A stretch of 64,000 nucleotides of DNA from Lytechinus pictus (Eukaryota). The notes beneath the pieces are model-generated. The model had not been told where the DNA came from. It saw only the letters and a list, made by a program, of their open reading frames with translations, and did no database searches. Position 1 is the first letter of the stretch, and the number at the start of each line of letters is the position of its first letter. Where the stretch lies: assembly GCF_037042905.1 (NCBI RefSeq), contig NC_087253.1, positions 9,424,001 to 9,488,000 on the forward strand, in the 5' to 3' direction. The translations under genes and the position numbers were made by a program. Positions 36,697-55,409 of the stretch are shown in pieces.

Positions 36697-37296
36697 ATGA
36701 AACAGGGAGTAAGGGGGGAAAAAATCGCGAAAGTTTTCTCCATTTTATTAAAGCCAAAACAAAAAAATATATAATTATGATTAATCATACACGATGAACA
36801 GGATTATAATTTAATAAATAAAACTGGAGTTTCGCCCTATTTTCAAGTGGTAGCTACAGACGACATTTCGTAGGCAAATAAACCATGTTCTACAGAAATC
36901 ATAGTTTGGGGATTTATTTATTTCTCATGGGATGTGCATCACGTTTAACCATGAAATTGTATTGATTGATCGAAATTCACGAAGACCAATATATATATAT
37001 ATATATGAAACAGGGAGTAAGGGGATAAAAAATCGCGAAAGTTTTCTCCATTTTATTAAAGCCAAAACTAAAAATATACAATTTATGATTAATCATACAT
37101 GATGAACAGGATTATAAGTTAATAAATAATGCTGGAGTTTCGCCCTGTTTTCAAGTGGTAGCTACATACGACATTTCGTAGGCAAATAAACCACGTTCTA
37201 CAGAAATCATAGTTTGGGGATTTATTTATTTCTCATGGGATGTGCATCACGTTTAACCATGGAATTGTATTGATTGATCGAAATTCACGAAGACCA
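36697..37296. repeat. ~308-bp tandem duplication, each unit preceded by (TA)n
   Basis: GAAACAGGGAGTAAGGGG...CACGAAGACCAA occurs twice with scattered substitutions. Confidence 0.9.
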
Positions 37297-38518
37297 AAAT
37301 ACGAGAGTTGGGGTGGGGGTATGCGAGGATGGGGCAAAGTGGGGCTGGGGGGGGGGGGGGTTGGGGTGAGATAAGTAACCCGGGGGGCCTCTGTTAGGAG
37401 ACACAAACAAAGTAGACGGGGGAGACAAATAAACAAATCGCGAAAGTTTAATGTTCTCTTTATTGATTAATAAAAAATATATATATGTCAATGATAAATT
37501 CTAAATTATTTGGAAATGGAGGTGATGTTTGCCCTGAGTGCTATTTTTCCTCTTTTTTTGCAGATACACCACTCGTCTAAATCATCAACAATCGTTTTGG
37601 GCGGCCGATAGGTCATAAAGCCTTAGCACTACATGACATAGTAACTCTGCAATGATTGTAACTATTATGGGAACCCTTAATGTGATTGGCTGCTAAACCT
37701 TGTTACCATGGAGTTATATTTACAAATTTACCACTGACAGTTGTAACTTCTGAAACGGACCCCTGGGCTACTTTGTATAAACATGGATTACTGTAGCTCT
37801 AAGAACTTTGCCAGATTAGATCAATAAGTATATATTTCACGAGATCGTCGATCCTAACCCTTTTCACATTCCTAAGCTAGTTGTGTATGTAGGGAATTAA
37901 TACATGTATATAATGCATGGCCATTCCACCCTATCTGTCTCCATTTCTCACCCCCCCCCCCTCCAGCCGCTCTCTCTCTCTCTCTCTCTCCCTCTAGCCC
38001 TCTCCTCTCTCTTTCCCTTTACCTCCCTCCATAAGACCAAGCCATCCCTTCTCCCACTATCTCTTTCTCTTATGTCATTCATAGATGGCAAATTATCCTA
38101 CGAAAATCGCTACCCGAGTGAGTCAAAAGAGTTATCAATTACACTTGTTTGAGCTGGATTTTTTTTGTAGAACATAAAGTAGCAACCATAAAACGTCTTT
38201 ATCACTGGAAGATGACATATGAAGAGCCAGATGTATTAAAATGGCTAGGTTTAATTAATTTAGCAGTACATATCACTGCAAAAACACCGGTGCTGATTTA
38301 ACACCAGCCCGGTATCTATATCGGTCCACATCAGAGAAGGGTTGAAACAACACCAGTTAATAATCAAACCGATATTGGTTTAACACTAATTGGTGTTGCT
38401 TTAATGCCAAATTGGTGTTAGCCTAACACAAATCCGGTGTTGTTTCAACACCTCTCTGGTGTGGACCGATATAGATACCAGGCTGGTGTTAAATTAACAC
38501 CTGCGTTTGCAGTGTATA

Positions 38519-38676
38519 CACTGTAAAAATTTAAGTGCTAATTTAGCACTGCACTACGAGTGCTGATTTTCTAGTTCAAATTTAAACTAGTTCAAATTTA
38601 AACTAGAAAATCAGCACTCGTAGTGCAGTCACTATGAAAGCACTGTAAGTCAATTAGCACTTCATTTTTTACAGTG
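38519..38676. mobile_element. CACTGTAAAAA-type palindromic MITE abutting a CACTG MITE
   Basis: CACTGTAAAAA..TTTTTACAGTG flanked by TA; internal palindrome; paralogous copy at ~45256-45418. Confidence 0.7.
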
Positions 38677-38876
38677 TAACTACGTACTATGCTCGAAACC
38701 GTGTCAAAGAAGTCGACCCCCAACCTCAAATTATGAAAACACAGGGGTTATTTCCACCTGGTCTACTTTTGAGACTAATACTGATTGAATAAAATGTACA
38801 GTTCATCTCGGTCCCCTCTTACAAAGAGGAAATTTCCACCACGTCCTTTGTCAAAAAAGAAGAAAAAAAACACCAC

Positions 38877-39049
38877 NNNNNNNNNNNNNNNNNNNNNNNN
38901 NNNNNNNNNNNNNNNNNNNNNNNNNNNNNNNNNNNNNNNNNNNNNNNNNNNNNNNNNNNNNNNNNNNNNNNNNNNNNNNNNNNNNNNNNNNNNNNNNNNN
39001 NNNNNNNNNNNNNNNNNNNNNNNNNNNNNNNNNNNNNNNNNNNNNNNNN
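38877..39049. other. Assembly gap
   Basis: Run of N; the equivalent stretch in copy B is ~870 bp of low-complexity sequence. Confidence 1.
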
Positions 39050-39207
39050 ATGTTGGCGTTGCTGGCTTTCCATAGTTGAGGTTAATGGGATCATTCGCAG
39101 CTCTCTGTGAGACAGGAATCTGGACTAACTCTCAATCAACACAATGTCCAGTAGATCTAGTTTCCTCTTCGCATTTTTTTTCTTTTATTTTTTCAAGTGA
39201 AAATTGT

Positions 39208-39739
39208 AAGGTCAATGAGGGGCCTAAGCTTTCGATCCTAGAAACAAGGAGACAAAAGGGGCATCAGTGAGTAGAGAAGACCAATCATGTTAGTGAAGGG
39301 GATGAAAGAAAAGGAGTAGGCAGACACAAAGGGAAGTTAGTGTAAGTAAGGCCAAGAGGGATTAAGATAATGAGGCAGGCAACATCAAACAGGATCTGGA
39401 ACAAAACAGTGATAGAGGGATGAATAACTAGAGAATTAGTGAGAGGTGGGTCAAACAGGTTACAAAGAAAGGCATAATAAACTGGTGCATAAGAGTGGGG
39501 GAAAAAAGGAAAAGAATGGGGAACAACTGATAATGTGCGAAAGACGTATAAGTATATATGATAAAGCATTAAACAAACTAAGAGAAGAAGGTAAGTGTAA
39601 ATATGTATCTATAAGTGATATGTTTATAAATATATCCAAAAAAGAAAAGTATATGAAAAAATATAAATACACATATGGTGTAACTGATATTGTAATCCGC
39701 TAGGTGTGACGGGAAAAAAACATAGGACTATACAGTAGG

Positions 39740-39786
<47 letters not shown>

Positions 39787-40266
39787 TATATGTGAGGAAG
39801 AGGAAGCAAATTGCCTAAAAAGGTAAAAGCAAATATAGATGAGAGGGGGTGTATTATATGAAGAAACCATAGTATACATGTAAATAAGCAAATGTGGTAA
39901 ATCTAAAAGAGGTGAGTGGAGAAAAAAAATATATATATAATAATTATTATATCGCCTGAATAAGGAAGGAAAAATTGGAGCCGAGCTTGTATGAGATATG
40001 GGAGGAAAGTAGAGGAAGAAACTATAATGTAACTATTCAAAAGAGCTGAGGGGAAAAATGATATGTATATATAAATTGAAAGTGGATAGGAAAGAATAAT
40101 CAGTCGTTTCCCTCTTGGATGTTCAAGCCATGAGGTTGGGTGGTGCGAAGTCGTCTCATCCAGAGCTTCTCTCTGCTAGTACGGACTGTGTCAGGACGGG
40201 TACCTAAAGATTCGATGCCCTGTAGCATCATGTCAGTGATGGAGTGGTTGGGGAGGTTAAAATGGC
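39208..40266 (-). mobile_element. 5'-truncated Penelope-like retroelement, specific to copy A
   Basis: 40266-40100 encodes HFNLPNHSITDMMLQGIE..REKLWMRRLRTTQPHGLNIQEGND* (GIY-YIG C-terminus); 11-bp TSD GTGAAAATTGT (39197-39207, 40267-40277); empty site at ~46689. Confidence 0.85.
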
Positions 40267-40603
40267 GTGAAAATTGTGTTAAGAAAAAAGTTCCTCAAAC
40301 TAAATGAACTTAAGTTGTTTCGAAATGGGGAGGCATATAATATAGCTTAACTTAGACCAAAAGGAGTATACTAGTCGGCAATTTACAAAAAAAAATACAA
40401 TCTTAACAATACTGTAAGAAATAGGACTTACAGAAGTGAATATTTACGACTAAGTATTGCTGAGCTATAATAGCTAGTTCGTTGTCAAAACGTCATACAC
40501 AGTCATATTCCAAGCAGCAACTGAGTTGAAATTATGAGTTGTAGTTATTATCTCCGCCTTTTGCATTTTATGCAGGATAGATTATGTTGGCCTAAGATCG
40601 GTC

Positions 40604-42058
40604 TTATGTTTGTGCTAATTTGAGCGTTGCGTATCTCTGGTATCCAAGATCCTCCATGACATCTCCACAATCATGTTCAACCTGTTTTATCTCAAGCTCT
40701 CTGAGATCCTTCATCCATTTCTGAGCGATCTTGCGCGAATTCTTATGCACTGAAAACGTTCCAGGATCGCTGCGTTTTGCTTGTGTATTATTGCGGACCC
40801 ATTCCCTGACGCTCTGTGGCAGGGGTAACCCTACAAATCGGTAAAGGTCCTCCGTTGTGTTGAGAGGCGCTGCCGCGAAGTCTTCGTATCTGAGAAGGTA
40901 GTATCTGCCCCGAAGCCAGTCTGGCATTGTTTTTGCTTCTTCTCGAGTCTCCCGCATCCATTTGCACATGGTATGAATGGAGACTCCAGTGCGTTCAGTA
41001 GAGTTTGTAAGCCCGAGGGGTGCAAGCCGGCCCTTCTTCTGGAACTCCGCCTCATGCGCTCGCACCAGGTTGCTCCACTCCTCAAAGTAATAGTGGATAC
41101 GCGAAGCAGCTGACCCCCTTGGATCTCGAACTAAGTGAATGACCTTGACATTGACCTTGTCCTCGACTACCAAGGGTTTTATATTCCCGAGATCAGCCCG
41201 GATGACCTTCGTAGCCATGATCCCATTGTATGTAGTACACAGGTTATTTACCATGTCAGAACTTCGAAATTTACATTGATTTATTTTTCCTGTTGCCTGA
41301 CATATCGCACGGTTCTTGATAAGACCGCCCCAAGGATTTGTCAAACGGACAAACTCCTGGGACACATTGCACGCCGCGATATCTCTAAGAGTTCTCGTCG
41401 AGTATTCATGAAGTTCCCGCGGGAATGGAGAAAACGGAAGCTGCCTCTTATTCCTAATTTTATCAACCAACCACAACGGCTCAAAGAGGAAAAAGATATT
41501 TGGATTTTGATTGAAAAGCTCTCCGGTGATTGAAGAGCCAAAACGCCACTGCGCCAGGATGACAACAAATGTCGATGACACCCTCGACGATGAGGATGTG
41601 GACGTTGTCGATCGGGACTCGACCACTCCCTGATCATCTGTGCGGACTCTAATTTTGCCCTCGTCTGAGACTCCTAGAAGTCCGGATTTCCGACTTGTGA
41701 TATTTTCCACTGATTCACGTTCTTCCAAAATATTTCGGAAATTTTCGTTGGAAATATTTCGGGAATTTCCTTCTGGCAGTTTTGAGTTATCTTCCTTAGA
41801 CAAATTTCGGGTAATATTATTTGGCGTACTGCTTGGTTTTTTGCGGTGAAAATGTTGAAAAATTATCTGGGAAATTTGCCGAGAGTTGACCTCGATGTCG
41901 TGCGACGCCCTCCTCGGATTGTCCTTGCCATTGCTGTAAAGAGTAAACTTGCCATAGGTCATTGTCATCAGGGAGATAGAAATAAAAGCAATGGATAATG
42001 CTACGCCGATACTCCACTTTGACAGAAATACACGTCTACAATGTAAAAGAACCCTCAT
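40604..42058 (-). CDS. Golgi carbohydrate (Gal/GalNAc/GlcNAc) 6-O-sulfotransferase, CHST1/3/5-like, copy A, 484 aa
   Basis: Type II TM (WSIGVALSIAFISISLMTM), stem, 5'-PSB AQWRFGSS..GELFNQNPNIFFLFEPLW, 3'-PB KVIHLVRDPRGSAASR, LRYEDF; first ATG at 42058 (track start 42082 is GTG); splice acceptor just upstream (exon starts 42122). Confidence 0.92.
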   Translation of the reverse strand: MRVLLHCRRVFLSKWSIGVALSIAFISISLMTMTYGKFTLYSNGKDNPRRASHDIEVNSRQISQIIFQHFHRKKPSSTPNNITRNLSKEDNSKLPEGNSRNISNENFRNILEERESVENITSRKSGLLGVSDEGKIRVRTDDQGVVESRSTTSTSSSSRVSSTFVVILAQWRFGSSITGELFNQNPNIFFLFEPLWLVDKIRNKRQLPFSPFPRELHEYSTRTLRDIAACNVSQEFVRLTNPWGGLIKNRAICQATGKINQCKFRSSDMVNNLCTTYNGIMATKVIRADLGNIKPLVVEDKVNVKVIHLVRDPRGSAASRIHYYFEEWSNLVRAHEAEFQKKGRLAPLGLTNSTERTGVSIHTMCKWMRETREEAKTMPDWLRGRYYLLRYEDFAAAPLNTTEDLYRFVGLPLPQSVREWVRNNTQAKRSDPGTFSVHKNSRKIAQKWMKDLRELEIKQVEHDCGDVMEDLGYQRYATLKLAQT

Positions 42059-42730
42059 ATCTTCGGTCACTTTTATTCCCACACCTCCATATAAATGATG
42101 TATGGAACGCTGCTCGGGAGGCCTGGATAATAAAAAAAACGAAATACAGAAAGAAATAATGAAATTGCGAGAACAAAAAGTAGTAAATCAGGAAATATAT
42201 CATCATGTTTCGCGAAAACCTACACATGTCATCCGTGAAACTGAATTGATCGAATCGTCCATTTATCAGAAAATATAGCATACAGATAAAATGAAATAAC
42301 ATTCTAAAGTGGGTACAATGAATAGCATGTTACTGAGTAGCGATAGGGTTTCTGAAATATATAACCAAACCTCCCCCGATGTGGATTTTTTTTAGAACAC
42401 AAAGACGAAACTTAATTTAATTGACAAACACACTCACACCGGTAGTAGGTACATTCCTAAAATATATCACTTTTTACAATTACTACGATTGATATTCCCT
42501 GCCTTCTTTTCGCTCTAATTGAGTAGTTCCGCAATTGCCGACCAGGAGACGATGAAAATCATCACTAATGTGAGGCATATGCCGTTATTTAGCAGAGTAG
42601 CCGAATTATATCGTAATCTATTTCCATCCACCCTTAGTCCAATTGAGTGTCAAAGGCTAATGCGTGATAAAACTCGTTTTGTGTTTGACTATTAATTATG
42701 CAAATAATGCGCAGGTGCTAGTTTGGTTAA

Positions 42731-43314
42731 AGGAGAATGAAACTCTTGGAGCAAGTTAGCTTTTGTGAAAGCAGAAAAATCAAAGAATAAGATCAACAAA
42801 AGTTTGAGTAAAATAGGACTAGCAATAGAAGAGTTATGAGCATTTGAATGTTGAGATCACTAATGCTGTGGAGATCCTCCCATTGGCAATGCGACTAAGA
42901 TCTATGATGTCACAGATGAACAACTCTCCCCTTTTGGACACTGAAAATATACCCCAAAACATCTCTTTTTGCTCATTCTAATCATATGACAAACAATTCA
43001 TCAATGATATAATGTTGTGAAACCTCTGTACTTGTCCTCTCATAAAGAGAACACCTCACCTTGTGATAGACTCTATAAAAGTGAGAATATAAGTGAAATA
43101 AGTACTAGAGTAATGAGGGAGTTGTACGTGTGTGACATCACAGATCTTGGTCGCATTGCCAATGGGAGGATCTACATGGCATTAGTGATCTCAATATTCA
43201 AATGCTCATAACTTTCTTATTATTCATTCCATCTTCCTCAAACTGTCAACAATATGTTTCTTTGATTTTTCTCTTTGATATGGATTCAGCTGGTTTCAAG
43301 GGTTTCATTCTCCT
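42731..43314. mobile_element. Kolobok-like MITE, specific to copy A
   Basis: TIR AGGAGAATGAAAC/GTTTCATTCTCCT, TTAA on both sides; single TTAA empty site in copy B (~54079). Confidence 0.9.
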
Positions 43315-45735
43315 TTAACCTCGCTGAGATATTGGTGCTAAGCATTTAAAGCTAAGCAAAATAATGCATAGACGACTAAAGTAATCATTGTGTAAATATT
43401 AAAAATGCATCTTGCTTAATGTTTTATCCAAAAATACCCTTCATCGAAAATGTGTATTTCATCGAAAAATAATCAAATGCAAACGCATGATCATGATATC
43501 ATTTGGCCATTATGGCTTTATAAATTCATGTCTTGCAATTAGTGTCAATATTCGATTTGCCTTTTTATCAAACGGATATCACAATTAATCTGTAGTGAAG
43601 TATAGTTCAAATCCCCCCAGATTTCCTCAGATCGCATGGCTAAGATGCCTCATCTGTTTAATGTATGACATCTGATGCGAATTATGCACCAGCAAATTAT
43701 CATCATTAATAGTGTCATTTTGATAATCAATATTATTAATAATATTATTATTGTATTGTTATTGTTGTTATCATTATTCTATATTTATTAGAATGATTAA
43801 TATCATCAATATTATCACCAGTATTACTGTGATTGTTTTTATCATAATTATTATTATTACCATTGTTATTATTACTACTACTACAAAAAACACTACTATT
43901 ACTACTACTACAACAACTAATACTACTACTACTACAATACTACTACTATTGCCTTTTTTTTTTTTTTTTTTTTAATGAGATGATGATAATGAAATGGTAT
44001 TGATTGATCAAAATTCACGAAGACCAAAATACGAGAGTTGGGGTGGGGGTATGCGAGGATGGGGCAAAGTGGGGGGGGGGGGGGGGGGGGGTTGGGTGAG
44101 ATAAGAAACCCGGGGCCTCTGTGAGGAGACGCAAACAAAGTAGACGGGGACAAATGAAACAGGGGGTAAGGGGACAAATCGTGAAGGTATGATGTTCTCC
44201 TTTTCTAAAACAAAAACCAAAATAAACATAAATAATCAAATTTAACTCCGTTGAAAATGGAGATGATGTTTGCCCTGAGTGCTATTTTCCCTCTTTTTGC
44301 AGATGCACCACTCGTCTAAATCAGTAACAATCGTTTGGGCGGCCGATATGTCATGAAGAATGAGCAGTACATGACATGGTAACTTTCCAATGATTGTAAC
44401 TGCTACAGGGACCCTTAATGTGATTGGCTGCTGAACCCTGTTACCATAGAAGTTACAATTACAAATTTACCACTGACAGTTGTAACTTCTGAAACGGACC
44501 CCTTGGCTACTTTGTATAAACTTGGATTACTGTAGCTCTAAGAACTTTGCCGGATTAGATCAAGAAGTATTTATTTCACGAGATCGTCGATCCTAACCCT
44601 TTTCCCATTCCTAAGCTAGTTGTGTATGTAGAGAATTGATACATGTATATAATGCATTGCCATTCCACCCTATCTGTCTCCCTTTCTCACCCCCCCCCCC
44701 CCCCCCGCCGCTCTCTCTCTCTCCCTCCCCCTCTAGCCCTCTCTTTCCCTTTATCTCCGTCAATAATGACCAAGCCATCCCTTCTCCCACTCTCTCTTTC
44801 TCTTATCTCATTCATAGATGGCCAATTATACTACAAAAATCACTACCCGAGTCAAAAGAGTTGTCAATTACACTTGTTTGAGCTGGATTTTTTTTTTTTT
44901 TTTTGTAGAACACAAAGTAGCAACAATAACACGTCTTTATCACTGGAAGATGACATATGAAGAGCCAGATGCATTACAATTGCTAGGTTTAATTAATTTA
45001 GCAGTACATATCACTGCAAAAACACCGGTGTTGATTTAACACCAGCCCGGTATCTATATCGGTCCACACCAGAGAAGCGTTGAAACAACACCAGTAAATC
45101 AAACCGATATTGGTTTAACACTAATTGGTGTTGCTTAAATGCCAAATTGGTGTTAGCCTAACACAAATCCGGTGTTGTTTCAACACCTCTCTGGTGTGGA
45201 CCGATATAGATACCAGGCTGGTGTTAAATTAACACCTGTGTTTTTGCAGTGTATACACTGTACAAATTTAAGTGCTAATTTAGCACTTACAGTGCTTGTA
45301 TAGTGACTGCACTACGAGTGCTGATTTTCTAGTTCAAATTTAAACTAGAAAATCAGCACTCGTTGTGCAGTCACTATGAAAGCACTGTAAGTGTTGAATT
45401 AGCACTTCATTTTTGTGTAACTACGTACTATGCTCGAAACCGTGTCAAAGAAGTCGACCCCCCGAAATCATGAAAACGCAGGGGTTATTTCCACCTGGTC
45501 TACTTTCGAGACTAATACTGATTGGATAAAAATGTAAGGTTCATCTCGGTCTCCTCTTACAAAGAGTTGTGATTGATCTGATCAACATTATCTTAATGGA
45601 AATCCATACTTGTCATGATACTCCATGCAGGAAATTTGCACCACGTCCTTCGTCAAAAAAGAAGAAAAAATACACCACACACTTAATTGTCGATACATGT
45701 ATATGAATATATACACATATAATTATAAGATAAAA

Positions 45736-45786
<51 letters not shown>

Positions 45787-47022
45787 ATGTGGATGTGTGT
45801 ATACATATACATTTTTTTTTTTTTTCAATATGTTTTTATTAAGGATTTCATTCAAATGAATTACATAAACTGCAGATGAATACAAAACAAAATACAAATC
45901 TTCATTTCATATCAACAAGGATATGCAAAAAAGTACATATATATTTACCAAGAACTGAAGCAAATAAGGACGGAATGAAACTCCTTAAAATTATACTTTT
46001 ATATCTGAAAAAAAAAAATAACTCAACTGAGTCCCCAACCCTCTATGTATTTCAATACTAATTAATGTTAAATGGCTATATAAATGATTTGCAGGAAAAC
46101 AGAAATCAACCTAAATGTATTATCATTGCATCCCATTTTAAATCAAGCTTCAACATAACTTTACATAATTATACACACATACACACCCACCTTAACACCC
46201 ATACACACATGCACATACCACGCATACGTAAAGAAACATAATATATACAAATCTGCATAATGAACGTTTAACATTTTGGCGCAATAGGATACAGAAAGAA
46301 AAAAAAAAAACCTGCAAATCATATTGATACAAGAGAAGGGGAAATTGAAAAAAACTAGTAAAAAGAAAAAAAAACATCAACATACACACCAGGATTCACA
46401 CTCGCACCACACTAGACAAATCCCACCTGTTCACATTCAAATCCCTTTTCACCTTCAGTTCATCCCATTTCTGCAAATGTAAACTTATACATACATATAC
46501 ACACACACACACCCTCACACACACCTCAGTGTGAATTTCAGATGTTGGCGTTGCTGGCTTTCCATAGTTGAGGTTAATGGGATCATTCGCAGCTCTCTGT
46601 GAGACAGGAATTTGGACTAACTCTCAATCAACACAATGTTCAGTAGATCTAGTTTCCTCTTTGCATCTTTTTTCTTTTATTTTTTCAAGTGAAAATTGCG
46701 TTAAGAAAAAAGTTCCTCAAACTAAATGAACTTAAGTTGTTTTGAAATGGGGAGGCATATAATATGGCTTAACTTAGACCAACAGGAGTACATTTTTCGG
46801 CAATTTACCAAAAATACAATCTTAACAATACTGTAAAAAAAAGGACTTACAGAAGTGAATATTTACGACTAAGTATTGCTGAGCTATAATAGCTAGCTCG
46901 TTGTCAAAATGTCATACACAGTCATATTCCAAGCAGCAACTGAGTTCAAATTATGAGTTGTAGTTACTATTTCCGCCTTTCGCATTTTATGCAGGATAGA
47001 TTATGTTGAACTAAGATCGGTC

Positions 47023-48477
47023 TTATGTTTGTGCTAATTTGAGCGTTGCGTATCTCTGGTATCCAAGATCCTCCATGACATCTCCACAATCATGTTCAAC
47101 CTGTTTAATCTCAAGCTCTCTGAGATCCTTCATCCATTTCTGAGCGGTCTTGCGCGAATTCTTATGCACTGAAAACGTTCCAGGATCGCTGTGTTTTGCC
47201 TGTGAATTATTGCGGACCCATTCCCTGACGCTCTGTGGCAGGGGTAACCCTACAAATTGGTAGAGGTCCTCCGTTGTGTTGAGAGGCGCTGCCGCGAAGT
47301 CTTCGTACCTGAGAAGGTAGTATCTACCCCGAAGCCAGTCTGGCATTGTTTTTGCTTCTTCTCGAGTCTCCCGCATCCATTTGCACATGGTAGGAATGGA
47401 GTCTTTGATGCGTTCAGTAGAGTTTGTAAGCCCGAGGGGTGCAAGCCGGCCCTTCTTCTGGAACTCCGCCTCATGCGCTCGCACCAGGTCGCTCCACTCC
47501 TCAAAGTAATAGTGGATACGCGAAGCAGCTGACCCCCTTGGATCTCGCACTAAGTGAATGACCTTGACATTGACCTTGTCCTCGACTACCAAGGGTTTTA
47601 TATTCCCGAGATCAGCCCGGATGACCTTCGTAGCCATGATACCATTGTATGTAGTACATAGGTTATTTACCATGTCAGAACTTCGAAATTTACATTGATT
47701 TATTTTTCCTGTTGCCTGACATATCGCACGGTTGTTGATAAGACCGCCCCAAGGATTTGTCAAACGGACAAACTCCTGGGACACATTGCACGCCGCGATA
47801 TCTCTAAGAGTTCTCGTCGAGTATTCATGAAGTTCTCGCGGGAATGGAGAAAACGGAAGCTCCCTTTTATTCCTAATTTTATCAACCAACCACAACGGCT
47901 CAAAGAGGAAAAAGATATTTGGACTTTGATTGAAAAGCTCTCCGATGATCGAAGAGCCAAAACGCCACTGCGCCAGGATGACAACAAATGTCGATGACAC
48001 CCTCAACGATGAGGATATGGACGTTGTCGATCGGGACTCGACCACTCCCTGGTCATCTGTGCGGACACTAATTTTGCCCTCGTCTGAGACTCCTGGAAGT
48101 CCGGATTTCCGACTTGTGATATTTTCCACTGATTCACGTTCTTCCAAAATATTTCGGAAATTTTCGTTGGAAATATTTTGGGATTTTCCTTCTGGCAGTT
48201 TTGAGTTATCTTCCTTAGACAAATTTCGGGCAATATTATTTGGCGTACTGCTTGGTTTTTTGCGGTGAAAATGTTGAAAAATTATCTGGGAAATTTGCCG
48301 AGAGTTGACCTCGGTGCCGTGTGACGCCCTCCTCGGATTGTCCTTGCCATTGCTGTAAAGAGTAAACTTGCCATAGTTCATTGTCATCAGGGAGATATAA
48401 ATAAAAGCAATGGATAATGCTACGCCGATACTCCACTTTGCCAGAAATACACGTCTACAATGTAAAAGAACCCTCAT
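47023..48477 (-). CDS. Carbohydrate 6-O-sulfotransferase, CHST1/3/5-like, copy B, 484 aa
   Basis: Same motifs and length as copy A, ~25 residue differences, intact ORF; first ATG at 48477. Confidence 0.92.
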   Translation of the reverse strand: MRVLLHCRRVFLAKWSIGVALSIAFIYISLMTMNYGKFTLYSNGKDNPRRASHGTEVNSRQISQIIFQHFHRKKPSSTPNNIARNLSKEDNSKLPEGKSQNISNENFRNILEERESVENITSRKSGLPGVSDEGKISVRTDDQGVVESRSTTSISSSLRVSSTFVVILAQWRFGSSIIGELFNQSPNIFFLFEPLWLVDKIRNKRELPFSPFPRELHEYSTRTLRDIAACNVSQEFVRLTNPWGGLINNRAICQATGKINQCKFRSSDMVNNLCTTYNGIMATKVIRADLGNIKPLVVEDKVNVKVIHLVRDPRGSAASRIHYYFEEWSDLVRAHEAEFQKKGRLAPLGLTNSTERIKDSIPTMCKWMRETREEAKTMPDWLRGRYYLLRYEDFAAAPLNTTEDLYQFVGLPLPQSVREWVRNNSQAKHSDPGTFSVHKNSRKTAQKWMKDLRELEIKQVEHDCGDVMEDLGYQRYATLKLAQT

Positions 48478-49127
48478 ATCTTCGGTCACCTTTATTCCCA
48501 CACCTCAATATAAATGATGTATGGATCGCTGCTCGGGAGGCCTGGATAATAAAATAACGAAATACAGAAAGAAATAATGAAAATTGCAAGAACAAAAAGT
48601 AGTAAATCAGCAAATATTTCATCATGTTTTGCGAAAACCTACACAGGTCATCCGTGAAACTGAATTGATCGAATCGTCCATTTATCAGAAAATTTTGATA
48701 CAAGGAGCAATTATCATAAGATCGAAGGACAATCTTCGCCGTGATCAAGGCTTGATTGGCGCCTAACAGGCAGCATCGCGCAAGTTTGAGCTCTCAATTA
48801 TGAGGAGAATATTGCTTTAGTTGAAGGACAATTTCCATCTTTAATAGTATCAACCATCTTGTTGCACTACATAGCAACTTTTGAAGACGTTTTGGAACAC
48901 TTTTTGTATGTTTTCATCGAGTTTCAATGTGATTTATATTTTGCACATATCCTGTAAATCTGTCTACATTGTCTCTACACAGTAGCCATTACATCATGTA
49001 CATTGACCATTGCAGGCTTGTCTGTTTACTCAACCTTGGCATCCAGCCTCAGAAATGGTAATGAAGCAGACAATTGATTGGAATTCCTCCACCTGAATAG
49101 CATGCCTGATGGTGCAATCCACCCATT

Positions 49128-52100
49128 ATGTTCACACTCGCCTTCTTCTTGGGTAGCTTGCTGTTAATACAGCAGCTACATGAAGTCAAGCACACTTGCA
49201 CAGCCAGCGTTGCATTGTACAACTACAAGGCTCATATTCCTTCTCCGAATGGAAAGAACTTTTATCATCTGAAGTATTTACAAGCCAGTATACATTACTA
49301 CAGCAACTGTGAATCAACATTTAACATTGAGCTCCTCAAATGCGGTGATATACACCCCAACCCTGGGCCGACAAACCAAAACCAAAGTCAACCCAGCACT
49401 CGTACTGTATTTAAATATTCAATTCAAGATTTATATAACCTACGTCAAAGAAATAGCTACAGGACCGTACCGCCAACGACATGGAAAGTGATAAAGGACC
49501 TCGGGATCACACCAAAACCACTACGCAAGCGAGGAAAACGAGCTGGTTCTAGGAAGCATCCTAAATCTTGTCCCAGACCGTACCAGGGGCAAGGCATACC
49601 TGTACTTATCCGACAACGCCTTTTACCTTCACAACGCAAACCTCGCCCAGCATGTTTTACTACAATCACGCCGATGCAACACGACAACGCTGCTCATCAG
49701 AGTCACCATGGCTACGACGTCCCAACCCTGCTACTACTGAACGCCAAATCACTGAGGAATAAGATCGACGAATTGTCAACAATCATTCAGGAATATAAGG
49801 TGGACATAGCAACGATTACCGAAACATGGTTTAGTCCAGAAGAACCCCTTGATATGTTCTCAATACCGGAGTTTTGCTTATATTCAAAACCCAGGGAAGA
49901 TCGATTAGGGGAAGGAGTCGCGCTCTACGCAAAACATCATCTTCAAGCGAGGATAATCGATGTACCTACACCTAAAGGAGTTGAAACTTTATGGATCTAC
50001 ATGAGACCCCAAAGACTTCCAAGGGAAATTAGCGGACTGATACTCTGCGTGATTTACTTCCCTCCAAGGAACCCCAACAAGCAGCAGTATGTTGATCACC
50101 TTCTCTCCACCCTGGACAGTCTTTTGCTTCGCTATCCAGAATCTGGGATCTCGGTAGTAGGTGATTTCAATGATTTAGATATTAATTTCTTACTTGAAAA
50201 TAACAAATTCAAACAAATTGTTACTCAACCAACCCGAGAGGGCAATATTATTGATATGATTGTAACCACTATAGACCCATTGTACCAAGAAACCAAAATA
50301 TTAGCCCCTATTGGCATGAGTGATCATAACTGTATCCTTTGGATACCCAAGGAAAAGGCTCATCGTATTAATCAAGTTAAGAAAAGAATTGGTCGCCCGA
50401 TTCTTGACAGTGGCAAAAGAGCTTTTGGTAGTTGGTTAACTAAGTTTACTTGGGAAGAAATGTATAAAGAAGATGATCCATCTTTGAAATGTCAAATGTT
50501 ATTAGATACTATGATGACTCACTTAGATATTCACATTCCGACAAAAGAGATTCGAATGCATTGTAGAGATAAGCCTTGGATCAATGCGGAAGTCAAAGAT
50601 GTTATACATCAAAGACAGCAAGCTTTCAGTAACAACTCCCAAAGTCTGTGGCGTTATTTAAGAAACAAAGTGATACGCTTAATCAGACAAAGAAAAGTTG
50701 CATATTATAATACCAGAGTTAGAAATTTGAAAACTAGTAATCCAGCAGCATGGTACAAACAGATTCGGATTTTAACCAACACTCACAAAAAACATAGCCC
50801 AATCCATATTCCGAATATTGACCCAAATGATCCTAATCATTATAAAAATATTGCTAATTATATTAATCAGCATTTCTTGAACGTGGCAAGTGATCTACAA
50901 AGTTTAAATAGAAATGAATTACCTGTTTATTTACCATCTCAGAAAACCTGCCCTATTGTACAACCTTACGAAGTATATAAACAATTGAAAACTTTGAACC
51001 AACAAAAATCCGTCCGAATTATTCGTGAGTTCGCCTTGGAATTGTGTTCACCACTAACTGATATCTTGAACAATTCCTTTTACCGGTCTGTTGTACCATG
51101 TCAGTGGAAACGCTCTGAGATTATACCCATTCCTAAATGTTTACCAGTAACAGTGCAGAACTTAAGACCAATAGCATTAACTAGCTATTTTGCAAAAATA
51201 GCAGAGTCGTTCATATGTAAATGGTTATTAGAAGATATATCAGATCACATTGATGTTAACCAATTGGAAATAGACAAGGGCTATCAACAAATCATTACCT
51301 AGTTCGATTGCTTCACCAATTGTATGAAAATGCAGAAAAATACCAATATATATCAACACTCATTTTTACAGACTATTCAAAAGCTTTCGACAGAATAAAT
51401 CACAATATCCTTGCAAAAAAATTACTTAACCTTGAAGTAAGACCGTGTCATATTTCCTGGATTTTGGACTTCCTCGAAAATCGACGACAACGAGTCAAAT
51501 ACCTTGGTCAGTGTCACATGCAGGTGTAGCTCAAGGTACAAAACTTGGGCCTATTCTCTTTCTAATAATGATTAATGATGCATGTATAAAATCTCAAATT
51601 CCATATTTTAAATATGTTGACGATCTCACACTGGTTGAAAGTCGCGTTCAATTACAACCATCCAAACTTCCAAATACGCTTACTGAATTTAACCAATGGT
51701 CTGTTAGCAATAACATGACACTTAATCCATCTAAATGTCAGTGCATGCATATAACTTTCTCTAAAAATATTGTTGATCAAAGTCGTATTTTCATTGGAAA
51801 TGAATGCTTGAGAACAGTGCAAGAAGCTAAAATATTAGGTATAATTGTTCAGTCTAACTTAAAATGGGATAGTCATATTTCACACCTATTACGTCGTAGT
51901 AATAAAAAACTATATATGCTTCGTTGTCTCAAAACGTATAAATTACCACTTTGCGATTTAATAACTGTATATAAGGGTTACATTAGGCCAATTTTGGATT
52001 TTGGAGTACCAGTTTTTAATGGAAACCTAACACAAAACCAAATTTCCTGTTTAGAACGTATTCAGTCAAGAGCATGCAGAATTATGCTAGGTGAAGAATA

Positions 52101-52353
52101 CACTAATTATACTGATGCTTTAGAAGTGTGTTCTTTACAATCTTTATCTGAAAGACGAAAACAATTGTGCATGAACTTTGCTGTATCCCTTGCCAACAGT
52201 CCACTTTGTAACCATTGGCTACCTCTCAACAACGATGTTGATTACTCATTGAGGAGAAGACCTAAATATCGTCAGTTTCGTTGTAAAACCAAACGTTTTC
52301 TAAACAGTCCATTGCCTTACTTTATAAATTTACTAAACGGTAATTTGAAATAA
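49128..52353 (+). pseudogene. LINE polyprotein (leader, 2A-like motif, APE endonuclease, reverse transcriptase) with two frameshifts
   Basis: APE motifs LNAKSL, ITETW, GDFN, PTREGNIID, SDH; RT motifs LRPIAL, DYSKAFD, GVAQGTKLGP, YVDD; frameshifts near 51265 and 51510 link ORFs 49128, 51308 and 51445. Confidence 0.92.
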
Positions 52354-52368
52354 GCTTGTATTGTTCCT

Positions 52369-52584
52369 TAGTCAGGATCTGAATGTTGGTTGCTGGGCGT
52401 TGGGGAGACCCACGGTCGCCGGTCCCACGTGGTACGTTCACAGGAGCCTCGCCCTCCTACTTTTCGCTCTTGTGACAGAGAGCGAGGGGTAGGAGGATTG
52501 GGCGGGTCTGGTGCACGCGCCGTATGGGACGGGTGGCCGTGGGGTTCCGCCGAGGAACGCCTGCCGGCGTTCAGATCTTGACTA
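52369..52584 (+). ncRNA. GC-rich rod-like RNA hairpin in LINE 3' UTR (predicted)
   Basis: Near-continuous pairing over 216 nt; basal 21 bp has 17 Watson-Crick + 4 G-U pairs, apical 16 bp has 13 + 3 G-U. Confidence 0.75.
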
Positions 52585-52950
52585 GTTATTTAGTTACCCG
52601 GTTGATATACACACAAACCTCTGCTGTGCAAGTCGTGTTATGCTAATACATCGCGCCTGATACCAATTTGTTTATTATTATTATTAGTTTATGTGCTTGT
52701 GATGAAAATTTTACAATTTTACCATTTTTAGAACTTTTTAAACTCAAACATATAATTGAATAGGTTTACAGGTGTTATTGTAATGCTTTTAATGCATGTA
52801 TTTCACATTGTAACAACTAAAAGGAAACGATGTTTGGATTTTTATACCAATATTTCACTCATTTTTATCAAAATTTATGTATGTGGTGGAAGACATTTAT
52901 ATCATTTTACAAAACTACGTCATCTTTTATATTTTAAGTAAATGTCTTCA

Positions 52951-53362
52951 GGTTTGAGCAGGACGGATTCCTGGGACGAGCGATCACTCACCCCCGCATA
53001 CTTTTTTTTTTATCCGTATGTTTAATGAGTTCAAGGTGCCAGGGGTGACTGTTGGGTGGGTGAGTTCAGTTGTTTGACTTAGTGTCTTTATGGTTGTTGG
53101 ATGAATGAGGAGCGTGGTATGAATGTGAGTGCGTTTTGTTTTGAAAGTGATTGTTTGTCGGCCCTATTAATGCATAGCTCCGGTGAAGTTAGCTGACCCT
53201 ACAAAGTTCCACCTGACCGATGGATTTGAATAACCAATTTCATTGCTCAGGTTGAATGGTGTTGTGGGATTAGCAATCCTTGGCTGGAGCTGTGCATTGG
53301 ACTTGACTGCTCGCTCGTCCCCAGACACCCTCCTGTCTTTCGTTTTTGTTCCTGCTTAAAAC
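52951..53362 (+). ncRNA. Second structured RNA domain in LINE 3' UTR (closing stems plus two long hairpins, predicted)
   Basis: TTTGAGCAGGA/TCCTGCTTAAA and GGGACGAGCGA/TCGCTCGTCCC close the domain; hairpin 53167-53300 has an 18-bp WC/G-U base and symmetric mismatches; weaker hairpin 52985-53131. Confidence 0.7.
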
Positions 53363-54190
53363 TAAGTTTTTTTATTGTTTGAATTAAGACGTTTATCAAT
53401 AAGCATCCTTCCACCACCACATGTGTTTGTATTTTTTTATTACTTCATCTTTTCCTTTTACTATACATATATTAAGTTGCATTATATTTTCGTCATCATT
53501 TCAAGTTTGATGTTTTTAAATCTGTACACTCTATGTATATATGCCTGTAAATTGTACGCAATTCAGCCTTTTGGCTGCAAAGTGCAATAATTTCAATAAA
53601 ACCTTTTCAATTCAATTCAATTCAAATAGCATACAGATAAAATGAAATAACATTCTAAAGTGGGTACAATGAATAGCATGTTACTGAGTAGCGATAGGGT
53701 TTCTGAAATATATAACCAAACCTCCCCCGATGTGGATTCTTTTTAAGAACACAATGAAACTTAATTTAATTGACAACACACTCACACCGGTAGTAGGCAA
53801 ATTCCTAAAATATATCACTTTTTTTTGCATTTACTACGATTGATATTACCTGCCTTCTTTTCGCTTTAATTGAGTAGTTCTGCAATTGCCGACCAGAAGA
53901 CGATGAAAATCATCACTAATGTGAGGCATATGCCGTTATTTAGCAGAGTAGCCGAAATTATATCGTAATCTATTTCCATCCACCCTGAGTCCAATTGAGT
54001 TTCGAAGGCTAATGCGTGATAAAACTCGTTTTGTGTTTGACTATTAATTATGCAAATAATGCGCAGGTGCTAGTTTGGTTAACTTCGCTGAGATATTGGT
54101 GCTAAGCATTTAAAGCTAAGCAAAATAATGCATAGACGACTAAAGTAATCATTGTGTAAATATTGAAAATGCATCTTGCTAAATGTCTTA

Positions 54191-54360
54191 TCTCAACCCA
54201 GGTGTGGTAAATGGGTACCGGTAGGAAGTAATTCCTTAAAAAGCTGTGTGCGCTATGAACGCCTAGCTTAGCCGGGTAATATAGGAGCGCCTTGAGCACC
54301 TAACAAGGTGGATATGTGCGCAATATAGATATCCTATATTATTATTATTATTATTATTAT
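54191..54360 (+). mobile_element. 5'-truncated SINE, specific to copy B
   Basis: Reverse-complement match to ~2240-2392; (ATT)n tail; absent at the paralogous site (~43425). Confidence 0.85.
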
Positions 54361-54594
54361 CCAAAAATACCCTTCATCGAAAATGTGTATTTTATCGAAA
54401 AATAATCAAATGCAAACGCATGATCATGATATCATTTGGCCATTATGGCTTTATAAATTCATGTCTTGGAATTAGTGTCAATATTCGATTTGCCTTTTTA
54501 TCAAACGGATATCACAATTAATCTGTAGTGAAGTATAGTTCAAATTCCCCCAGATTTCCTCAGATCGCATGGCTAAGATGCCTCATCTGTTTAA

Positions 54595-55193
54595 AGGACA
54601 AGTCCACCCCAACAAGAAATTGATTTGAATAAAAAGAGAAAAATCCAACAAGCATAACACTGAAAATTTTATCAAAATCGAATGTAAAATAAGAAAGTTG
54701 TGACATTTTAAAGTTTCGCTTAATTTCACAAATCAGTTATATGCACACCCTGTTCGGCATGCAAATGAGGAGACTGATGACGTCATCCACTCACTATTTT
54801 GTATTTTATTATATGAAATATTAAATATTCTAAATTTCCCCTCATTGTCAAGTGAAACAACGATTAATTCCTCCCTGAACATGTGGAATCACCATTGTTT
54901 AATACTATATGGTTAAGTCAAGTTGGTCCTTATTGTCAAATCTGTAAAAAATGAAATATTGTATAATTCAAACAATAAAAAACAAAAAAAATAGTGAGTG
55001 ATGGACATCATCGACGGACTGATCTGCATGTCACTGAGTTGTGGATATCACAGTTTTGTGAAAAATAAGGGAAACTTGAAAATGCCATAACTTTCTTATT
55101 TTACAGCCGATTTTGATGAAATTTTCAGCATTCTGCTAGTTTGATTTTTCTCTATTCATTCTAATCAACATTTTTCTGGGGTGGACTTGACCT
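54595..55193. mobile_element. Kolobok-like MITE, specific to copy B
   Basis: TIR AGGACAAGTCCACCCC/GGGGTGGACTTGACCT, TTAA on both sides; single TTAA empty site at 43658-43661. Confidence 0.9.
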
Positions 55194-55409
55194 TTAATGT
55201 ATGACATCTGATGCGAATTATGCACTAGCAAATTATCATCATTATTAGTGTCATTTTGATAATCAATATTATTAATAATTATTGTATTGTTATTGTTGTT
55301 ATCATTAGTTTATATTCATTAGAATGATTGATATTATCAATATTATTACCAGTATTACTATGATTATTTTTATCATAATTATTATTATTACCATTGTAAG
55401 TATTACTAC

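Follow-up and report, generated by a model that had tools for sequence, protein, structure and literature searches.

A nested hairpin domain in the 3' UTR of a Lytechinus pictus LINE and evidence that its pairing has been kept

The 3' untranslated region (UTR) of a non-LTR retrotransposon (LINE) inserted in a 64-kb stretch of Lytechinus pictus DNA (64,000 nucleotides, hereafter the window) contains a nested hairpin domain at 52951-53362. Alignment of the inner hairpin with its counterpart in a related element shows that the pairing persisted as the sequence changed, and the structure of this hairpin fits sense-strand RNA only, not DNA or cDNA. We consider the chances about even that the domain is a selected accessory structure of the LINE's sense-strand RNA that serves the element, and we rate any single mechanism for it lower than the selected-structure reading itself.

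Results

The domain belongs to a LINE insertion

Within the window, 40267-42284 matches 46689-48702 at 96%, and 42275-42730 matches 53626-54082 at 95%, as parts of a tandem segmental duplication. The first duplicate therefore represents the empty site, which identifies about 48694-53625 as a single insertion ending in (TTCAA)4 (Table 1). Since this empty site brackets the insertion, the entire tail, which measures 1272 nt from the stop codon (52353) to the end of (TTCAA)4 (53625), is part of the LINE. Both results agree with the earlier note on this DNA, which had given the 3' UTR as 1.27 kb and had placed the domain within the 3' UTR of a LINE. No clear target-site duplication was found at the LINE insertion when both junctions were aligned (empty site near 42275-42284), and no further copy of the LINE or of the domain was found elsewhere in the 64-kb window.

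The tandem segmental duplication as a whole spans 37259-43878 versus 43989-55409, with 88-99% identity, and the LINE is present in the second copy only. Directly upstream of the LINE, the minus strand carries an open reading frame (ORF) with sulfotransferase domains (PF00685 and PF13469, 47023-48501); this ORF lies inside the duplicated segment and thus has a second copy near 40600-42080.

The closest named proteins to the LINE ORF come from Branchiostoma, Amphiura and Lytechinus, with 34-39% identity. Three-frame translation showed that the ORF is broken by two frameshifts within the reverse transcriptase (RT), at about 51290 and about 51500, so the window's copy of the LINE is dead. The start of the ORF (49128-49370) encodes a hydrophobic segment and, after it, a 2A-like (NPGP) motif, GDIHPNPGP, near the N-terminus; 2A-like sequences are known from sea-urchin and amphioxus LINEs (PMC3708506).

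Table 1. Features of the LINE and of its 3' UTR in the window
Feature	Position	Strand	Basis or detail
Inserted non-LTR retrotransposon (LINE), ~4.93 kb	about 48694..53625	+	Empty-site comparison and aligned junctions
LINE ORF, APE endonuclease and reverse transcriptase	49128..52353	+	Pfam PF03372, PF00078; three-frame translation
Outer long-range stem, 5' arm	52951..52992	+	Inverted repeats, fold; conserved core GGGACGAGCGA at 52973-52983
C-poor, G/U-rich filler	52993..53166	+	Without significant fold of its own
Inner rod (rod 2): 5' arm 53168-53228, loop 53229-53234, 3' arm 53235-53299	53167..53300	+	Folding
Outer long-range stem, 3' arm	53301..53362	+	Inverted repeats, fold; conserved core UCGCUCGUCCC at 53311-53321
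Terminal stem-loop, CAGCC-N4-GGCUG (53564-53577) inside AUUGUAC/GUGCAAU	53551..53588	+	Fold, conservation
AAUAAA (53595-53600) and (TTCAA)4 tail (53606-53625), LINE 3' end	53595..53625	+	Sequence, junctions

The domain folds as a rod beside a long-range stem

The 134-nt rod 2 folds as one hairpin of 51 pairs, eight of which are G·U, with the 6-nt loop AAUAAC. Its minimum free energy (MFE) is -68.0 kcal/mol, compared with -33.7 +/- 3.4 kcal/mol for 200 dinucleotide-preserving shuffles (z -10.1). The arms of the outer stem consist of the inverted repeats I1 (52959-52990 / 53304-53335) and I10 (52950-52963 / 53350-53363), and their duplex reaches -42.2 kcal/mol compared with -21.8 +/- 3.8 kcal/mol for shuffled arms (z -5.3), with none of 500 shuffles as good. 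Folding of the full 412-nt domain gave a z of -4.84. The outer stem, of ~35 bp, closes the C-poor, G/U-rich tract, and the rod, of ~55 bp, adjoins the outer stem's 3' arm. An Rfam search at a permissive E-value assigned no family and returned two sub-threshold miRNA matches, at 23-24 bits versus gathering thresholds of 84-130.

Much of this architecture had been proposed in the earlier note from the letters of the DNA. The 134-nt rod, the helices listed for it (each of which occurs in the MFE or the centroid structure) and the enclosing long-range stems were all recovered, and the rod, the domain and the outer arms lie far beyond the shuffled controls that the note had named as a check. The helix at the base of the rod is likewise present, although it comprises 17 bp rather than 18. 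The note had also reported no similarity between the domain and the first rod of the same UTR (rod 1, 52369-52584), and indeed the two share 7-mers only. In contrast, a weaker GU-rich hairpin proposed at 52985-53131 folds no better than shuffled sequence (z 0.05, with 107 of 200 shuffles equally good), and the counterpart filler of the related element L001 has a z of +1.28. Rather than about three independent long stems, as the note had it, the UTR carries two strong rods and one long-range stem.

The tail of the LINE is layered

Relatives of the LINE were found by a protein search with the C-terminal part of the RT and by contig look-ups in metagenome assemblies (Table 2). The presence and absence of tail parts among them indicate that the tail is layered, the terminal module being the deepest, followed by the outer stem, then rod 2 and finally rod 1, the youngest. 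The terminal stem-loop, AAUAAA and pentamer tail are common to relatives down to 54% protein identity: the stem-loop is conserved in L002 and L004, and L049 has CAGCC-GCU-GGCUG with a 3-nt loop, while the unit of the short-repeat tail is TTCAA in the window, TCTCAA in L002 and L004, and ATTGA in L049. The stem-loop and pentamer tail lie 250-325 nt downstream of the domain, separate from the rod, and by analogy with UnaL2 and ZfL2 (PMC1636434, PMC4176376) this stem-loop is probably the hairpin recognized by the RT.

Homologous G/U-rich fillers are found in L001, L002 and L004. Among the relatives compared, rod 2 is common only to the window and L001, where it folds at -84.3 kcal/mol (z -7.1 for L001 1300-1540), and rod 1, absent from L001, L002 and L004, is found in the window's subfamily only. 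Neither L049 nor L003 has the domain, and L002 and L004 lack the rod, so the domain is not essential for such LINEs. We infer that it is an add-on rather than core machinery, distant relatives keeping the terminal module without it.

Table 2. Tail parts in relatives of the LINE
Element	Relation to the window's LINE	Terminal module	Outer stem and filler	Rod 2	Rod 1
L001	79.5% DNA identity (ORF)	Outside the contig, which ends ~70 nt before the LINE end	Yes	Yes, at 1354-1497	No
L002, L004	~75% DNA similarity to the ORF	Yes	Yes (filler ~140 nt)	No	No
L049 (Tara Oceans marine metagenome contig)	54% protein identity	Yes	No	No	No

The tails of three further relatives found by protein (L003, L005 and L006) are unrelated to the window's tail. 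When JGI metagenome contigs were scanned for the pattern of the conserved 3' arm, 42 loci came up, all of them chance matches and none homologous by BLAST. Gene callers called no ORF across the rod in L001. The idea that the rod arose as an inverted duplication of the G/U-rich filler found no support, neither arm resembling the filler of relatives without the rod more than shuffled sequence does.

Several other features of these tails were observed. A conserved block at 52738-52871 in the AT-rich linker (motif ATTGAATAGG..TTT) is recognizable in L001, L002 and L004 and coincides with a depth peak in organism B, a related species. Rod 1 is optional, in that a high-depth contig of organism B skips 52359-52591 and has 15 other letters in place. 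The contig L049 contains, at 1204-2300, a LINE of the same wider family with a long (CA)n tract within its tail and an (ATTGA)n end.

Evidence that pairing was kept as the sequence diverged

The comparison covers two rod-bearing sequences, those of the window and L001. Their identity is 79.5% in the ORF, ~62% in the rod, 59% in the linker and 47% in the filler; the rod has changed at nearly the rate of its surroundings, yet the fold is strong in both sequences. In the helix 53211-53216 / 53247-53252, the 3' arm aligns gap-free and has a conserved block on either side. The six pairs of this helix include three in which both letters differ and pairing is retained (A-U/G-C, C-G/G-C and U-A/A-U) and two in which one side has changed via G·U. 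An additional C-G to G-C swap is found at 53180/53287.

When the alignment was guided by structure, 33 of 48 pairs were unchanged, 7 had changed on one side and 8 on both sides, and RNAalifold found 6 two-sided changes among 42 pairs. A sequence-only alignment gave 1-4 two-sided changes, with 35 of 50 and 40 of 51 pairs staying canonical compared with 14-26 when the partner was slid by 1-3 columns. The two-sided count depends on the alignment, from 1 to 8, and four were taken as robust. For two lineages that diverged neutrally by 12-19% each, 0.6-1.2 kept two-sided changes are expected per 50 pairs, and the probability of four or more is 0.002-0.03. Neutrality would also have broken 14-21 pairs, whereas almost none is broken in either lineage.

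The 1x1 loops are identical in the window and L001 lineages, which indicates that the ancestral rod was already imperfect. Conservation is uneven along the rod: the apex (53218-53245) hardly varies across the window, L001 and the organism A and B copies, whereas in the mid-stem only the pairing is kept. The 14-bp core of the outer stem, GGGAYGAGCGAGC / GCUCGCUCRUCCC, is found in the window, L001, L002 and L004, and compensatory changes occur among these four elements, one pair going from C-G to U-A and another forming the series G-C, G-U, A-U.

Folding energy was less discriminating. A perfect palindrome mutated by 15% per lineage reached about -66 and -83 kcal/mol, matching the observed energies, so energy alone does not reject neutral decay. 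A simulation that started from one rod at the pairwise distance never kept the stability, and it was set aside as unfair because it treated a descendant as the ancestor. Taken together, the compensatory changes, the few broken pairs, the ancestral imperfection and the kind of imperfections speak against neutral decay, as far as the aligned sequences can tell.

The rod fits sense-strand RNA

The plus strand of the rod folds at -68.0 kcal/mol in the window and -84.3 kcal/mol in L001, compared with -44.1 and -55.7 kcal/mol for the minus strand, so that the plus strand is better by 24-29 kcal/mol. The rod contains eight G·U pairs in the window and nine in L001, with no A·C 1x1 loop; in simulated neutral decay of a perfect palindrome, at least eight G·U with no A·C appeared in only 0-3 of 150 runs. 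This combination of strand energies, G·U pairs without A·C and rarity under neutral decay fits the sense RNA. The structured-RNA module proposed in the earlier note is borne out to the extent that a sense-strand structure exists and is kept in related elements.

A-to-G RNA editing on double-stranded RNA (dsRNA), once copied into DNA, could produce some of the G·U pairs in the absence of selection. Between the window and L001, the one-sided differences comprise ~3 of the A/G type and ~5 of the C/U type, and position 53240, which is U in the window and C in all other copies read, points to a change from C to U. Editing may contribute, but it is unlikely to explain the pattern. A nested MITE or foldback element was also considered and fits poorly: G·T and A·C appositions should then be equally likely, in contrast with the 8-9 G·U and no A·C that were seen. 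No duplication, of TA or otherwise, was found at the rod ends in the window or L001, and there is no further copy of the rod within the 64-kb window.

Rod-bearing copies in reads of two organisms

Every other copy read in organisms A and B carries G at 53217 and C at 53240, letters that convert the window's C·C mismatch and one of its G·U pairs into G-C pairs, which indicates that the window's rod is slightly decayed. Of six listed substitutions within the rod, four preserve or form a pair, one falls in a loop and one disrupts a pair; three of the six are A>G.

Read depth in organism A climbs steadily in the 3' direction, the trend expected from 5' truncation. In organism B, with 85% likeness, the rod and the terminal module at the 3' end are the best covered parts of the tail, which fits their being its most conserved parts. 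An independent, abundant palindromic repeat behind the depth on the organism B rod was judged unlikely, since contigs tie the rod to its LINE flanks: those from organisms A and B join it to the LINE filler and the outer arm.

In rRNA-depleted RNA, 13 read pairs were found in ~6% of one run, in both directions and with thin coverage of the rod, and none of the 13 came from the exact window copy. These reads indicate that rod-bearing members of the family are transcribed at a low level.

Two kinds of rearranged contig were also seen. Low-depth contigs of organism B join 53322 to 53499 and 53326 to 53544, placing the outer 3' arm almost directly before the terminal module; such compact tails may be short-tail variants or non-autonomous derivatives. 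In organism A, contigs lose similarity at 53301, the 3' base of the rod, and at 53173, 6 nt inside its 5' base. These are single cases, and they may be 5'-truncated copies in which reverse transcription halted at the rod.

Discussion

If the domain is an accessory structure under selection, it would be kept for helping the LINE RNA, most probably as a protein-binding or RNP-organising scaffold. A scaffold role is suggested by the conservation of the rod apex and the outer stem core as sequence and of the mid-stem as pairing only. The outer stem would hold out the G/U-rich strand, and the binder could be the element's own protein or a host dsRNA- or GU-binding protein, with binding affecting the stability, transport or cis-preference of the RNA. 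The domain would act alongside the terminal stem-loop and pentamer tail, the likely recognition site of the RT.

Simple descent from a palindrome would account for part of what we observed. The rod could be a neutral relic, that is, a perfect inverted duplication or captured palindromic repeat of an ancestral master copy that is now decaying, with some of its G·U pairs being scars of A-to-G editing. The match of the energies to perfect-palindrome decay at ~15% per lineage points this way, as do the coming and going of rods among sub-lineages (rod 1 being confined to the window's subfamily and rod 2 to the window and L001) and the three A>G changes among the six listed rod substitutions. However, decay would have to produce four or more two-sided changes where 0.6-1.2 are expected, leave almost no broken pair where 14-21 are expected, and yield 8-9 G·U with no A·C, and it would have to begin from an ancestor that, given the 1x1 loops common to both lineages, was already imperfect. 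The one-sided differences are mixed (~3 A/G and ~5 C/U) rather than A-to-G en masse. A duplicated or captured origin also finds no trace in a flanking duplication or a second copy in the window; in contigs from organisms A and B the rod is connected to LINE filler and outer arm, and the rod arms show no similarity to the filler of rod-less relatives. We therefore regard a neutral relic as unlikely. Recognition by the element's own RT protein, with the rod as a second and long version of the 3' hairpin of stringent-type LINEs, would explain why the apex (53218-53245) is near-invariant and the mid-stem keeps its pairing only, since this matches the two-part recognition of stem and loop in ZfL2 (PMC4176376). 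The position of the rod argues against such a role, as it ends (53300) 325 nt before the LINE 3' end (53625), while a separate short stem-loop (53551-53588) adjoins the tail and is conserved much more deeply; moreover, L002, L004 and L049 carry the terminal module without the rod. A second recognition hairpin is accordingly, in our estimate, distinctly improbable.

The earlier note had suggested that the module may yield small RNAs acting on host or element transcripts; on this reading, Drosha and/or Dicer would cut the rod into miRNA-like or endo-siRNA duplexes. The long, near-continuous sense-strand duplex with its single symmetric mismatches would suit such a precursor, and the weak, sub-threshold Rfam miRNA matches lean in the same direction. 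A canonical animal pri-miRNA, however, has a stem of ~35 bp (about three helical turns), a larger apical loop and single-stranded flanks, whereas the stem here has 51-59 bp and a loop of 4-6 nt, and its 3' flank runs straight into the outer stem. The Rfam match scored 23 bits against a gathering threshold of 130. The note had suggested a search for complementarity between the arms and transcripts, and none of at least 16 nt to the domain was found elsewhere in the 64-kb window. Cleavage would also part the ORF from its 3' recognition tail, and a lineage subject to it should lose the hairpin. Human miRNAs from the L2 3' end provide a precedent, but many of the hairpins in that precedent consist of two neighbouring inverted copies rather than being built into the element (PMC6433296). 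On balance, a small-RNA precursor seems very unlikely. The bolder proposal that an active LINE lineage keeps, under selection, a dsRNA module that engages host Dicer, Drosha, ADAR or Staufen to its own benefit, either as a small-RNA precursor or as a decoy or transport signal, with the rods added successively (outer stem, rod 2, rod 1), is one to which we attach very little probability.

Compared with these alternatives, a selected accessory structure of the LINE RNA is the reading that we prefer. Most LINEs are known to recognize their own RNA through short 3' hairpins, and other roles of LINE tails are little known. The domain would offer a concrete case of an accessory RNA structure evolving in a mobile element, with its pairing apparently kept as RNA. 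The elements form a natural series of no domain, stem only, stem plus one rod, and stem plus two rods, which bears on RNA stability, transport, cis-preference and small-RNA production. Even if the rods are neutral or editing scars, they still show how hairpins arise and persist in retrotransposon RNA.

Three known systems provide points of comparison. R2 is a site-specific element with a different endonuclease, whose structured 3' UTR binds the R2 protein, the whole 3' UTR being the recognition unit. The domain resembles it as a multi-helix 3' UTR domain of a non-LTR element in which structure is conserved more than sequence, and differs in being optional among relatives. The nearest precedent for the small-RNA idea is found in the mammalian L2-derived miRNAs, whose precursors correspond to the 3' end of a CR1/L2-group LINE (PMC6433296); those miRNAs come from old, dead copies in host transcripts, whereas the hairpin here is kept in a recently mobile element. 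The eel UnaL2 and zebrafish ZfL2-1/2 are stringent-type LINEs with short 3' stem-loops beside their tail repeats (PMC1636434, PMC4176376). In common with them, the window's element has a sense-strand 3' UTR hairpin, APE and RT, and an end of short tandem repeats, and its stem is conserved as paired structure and its loop-proximal part as sequence. Its rod differs in being ~55 bp long, lying 325 nt upstream, sitting inside a long-range stem that also encloses a G/U-rich tract and being absent from close relatives, and the position beside the tail repeats is taken here by the separate stem-loop at 53551-53588. Hairpins in LINE 3' tails are thus already known, and what is new here is a nested domain of ~55 + 35 bp, added stepwise and carrying compensatory changes.
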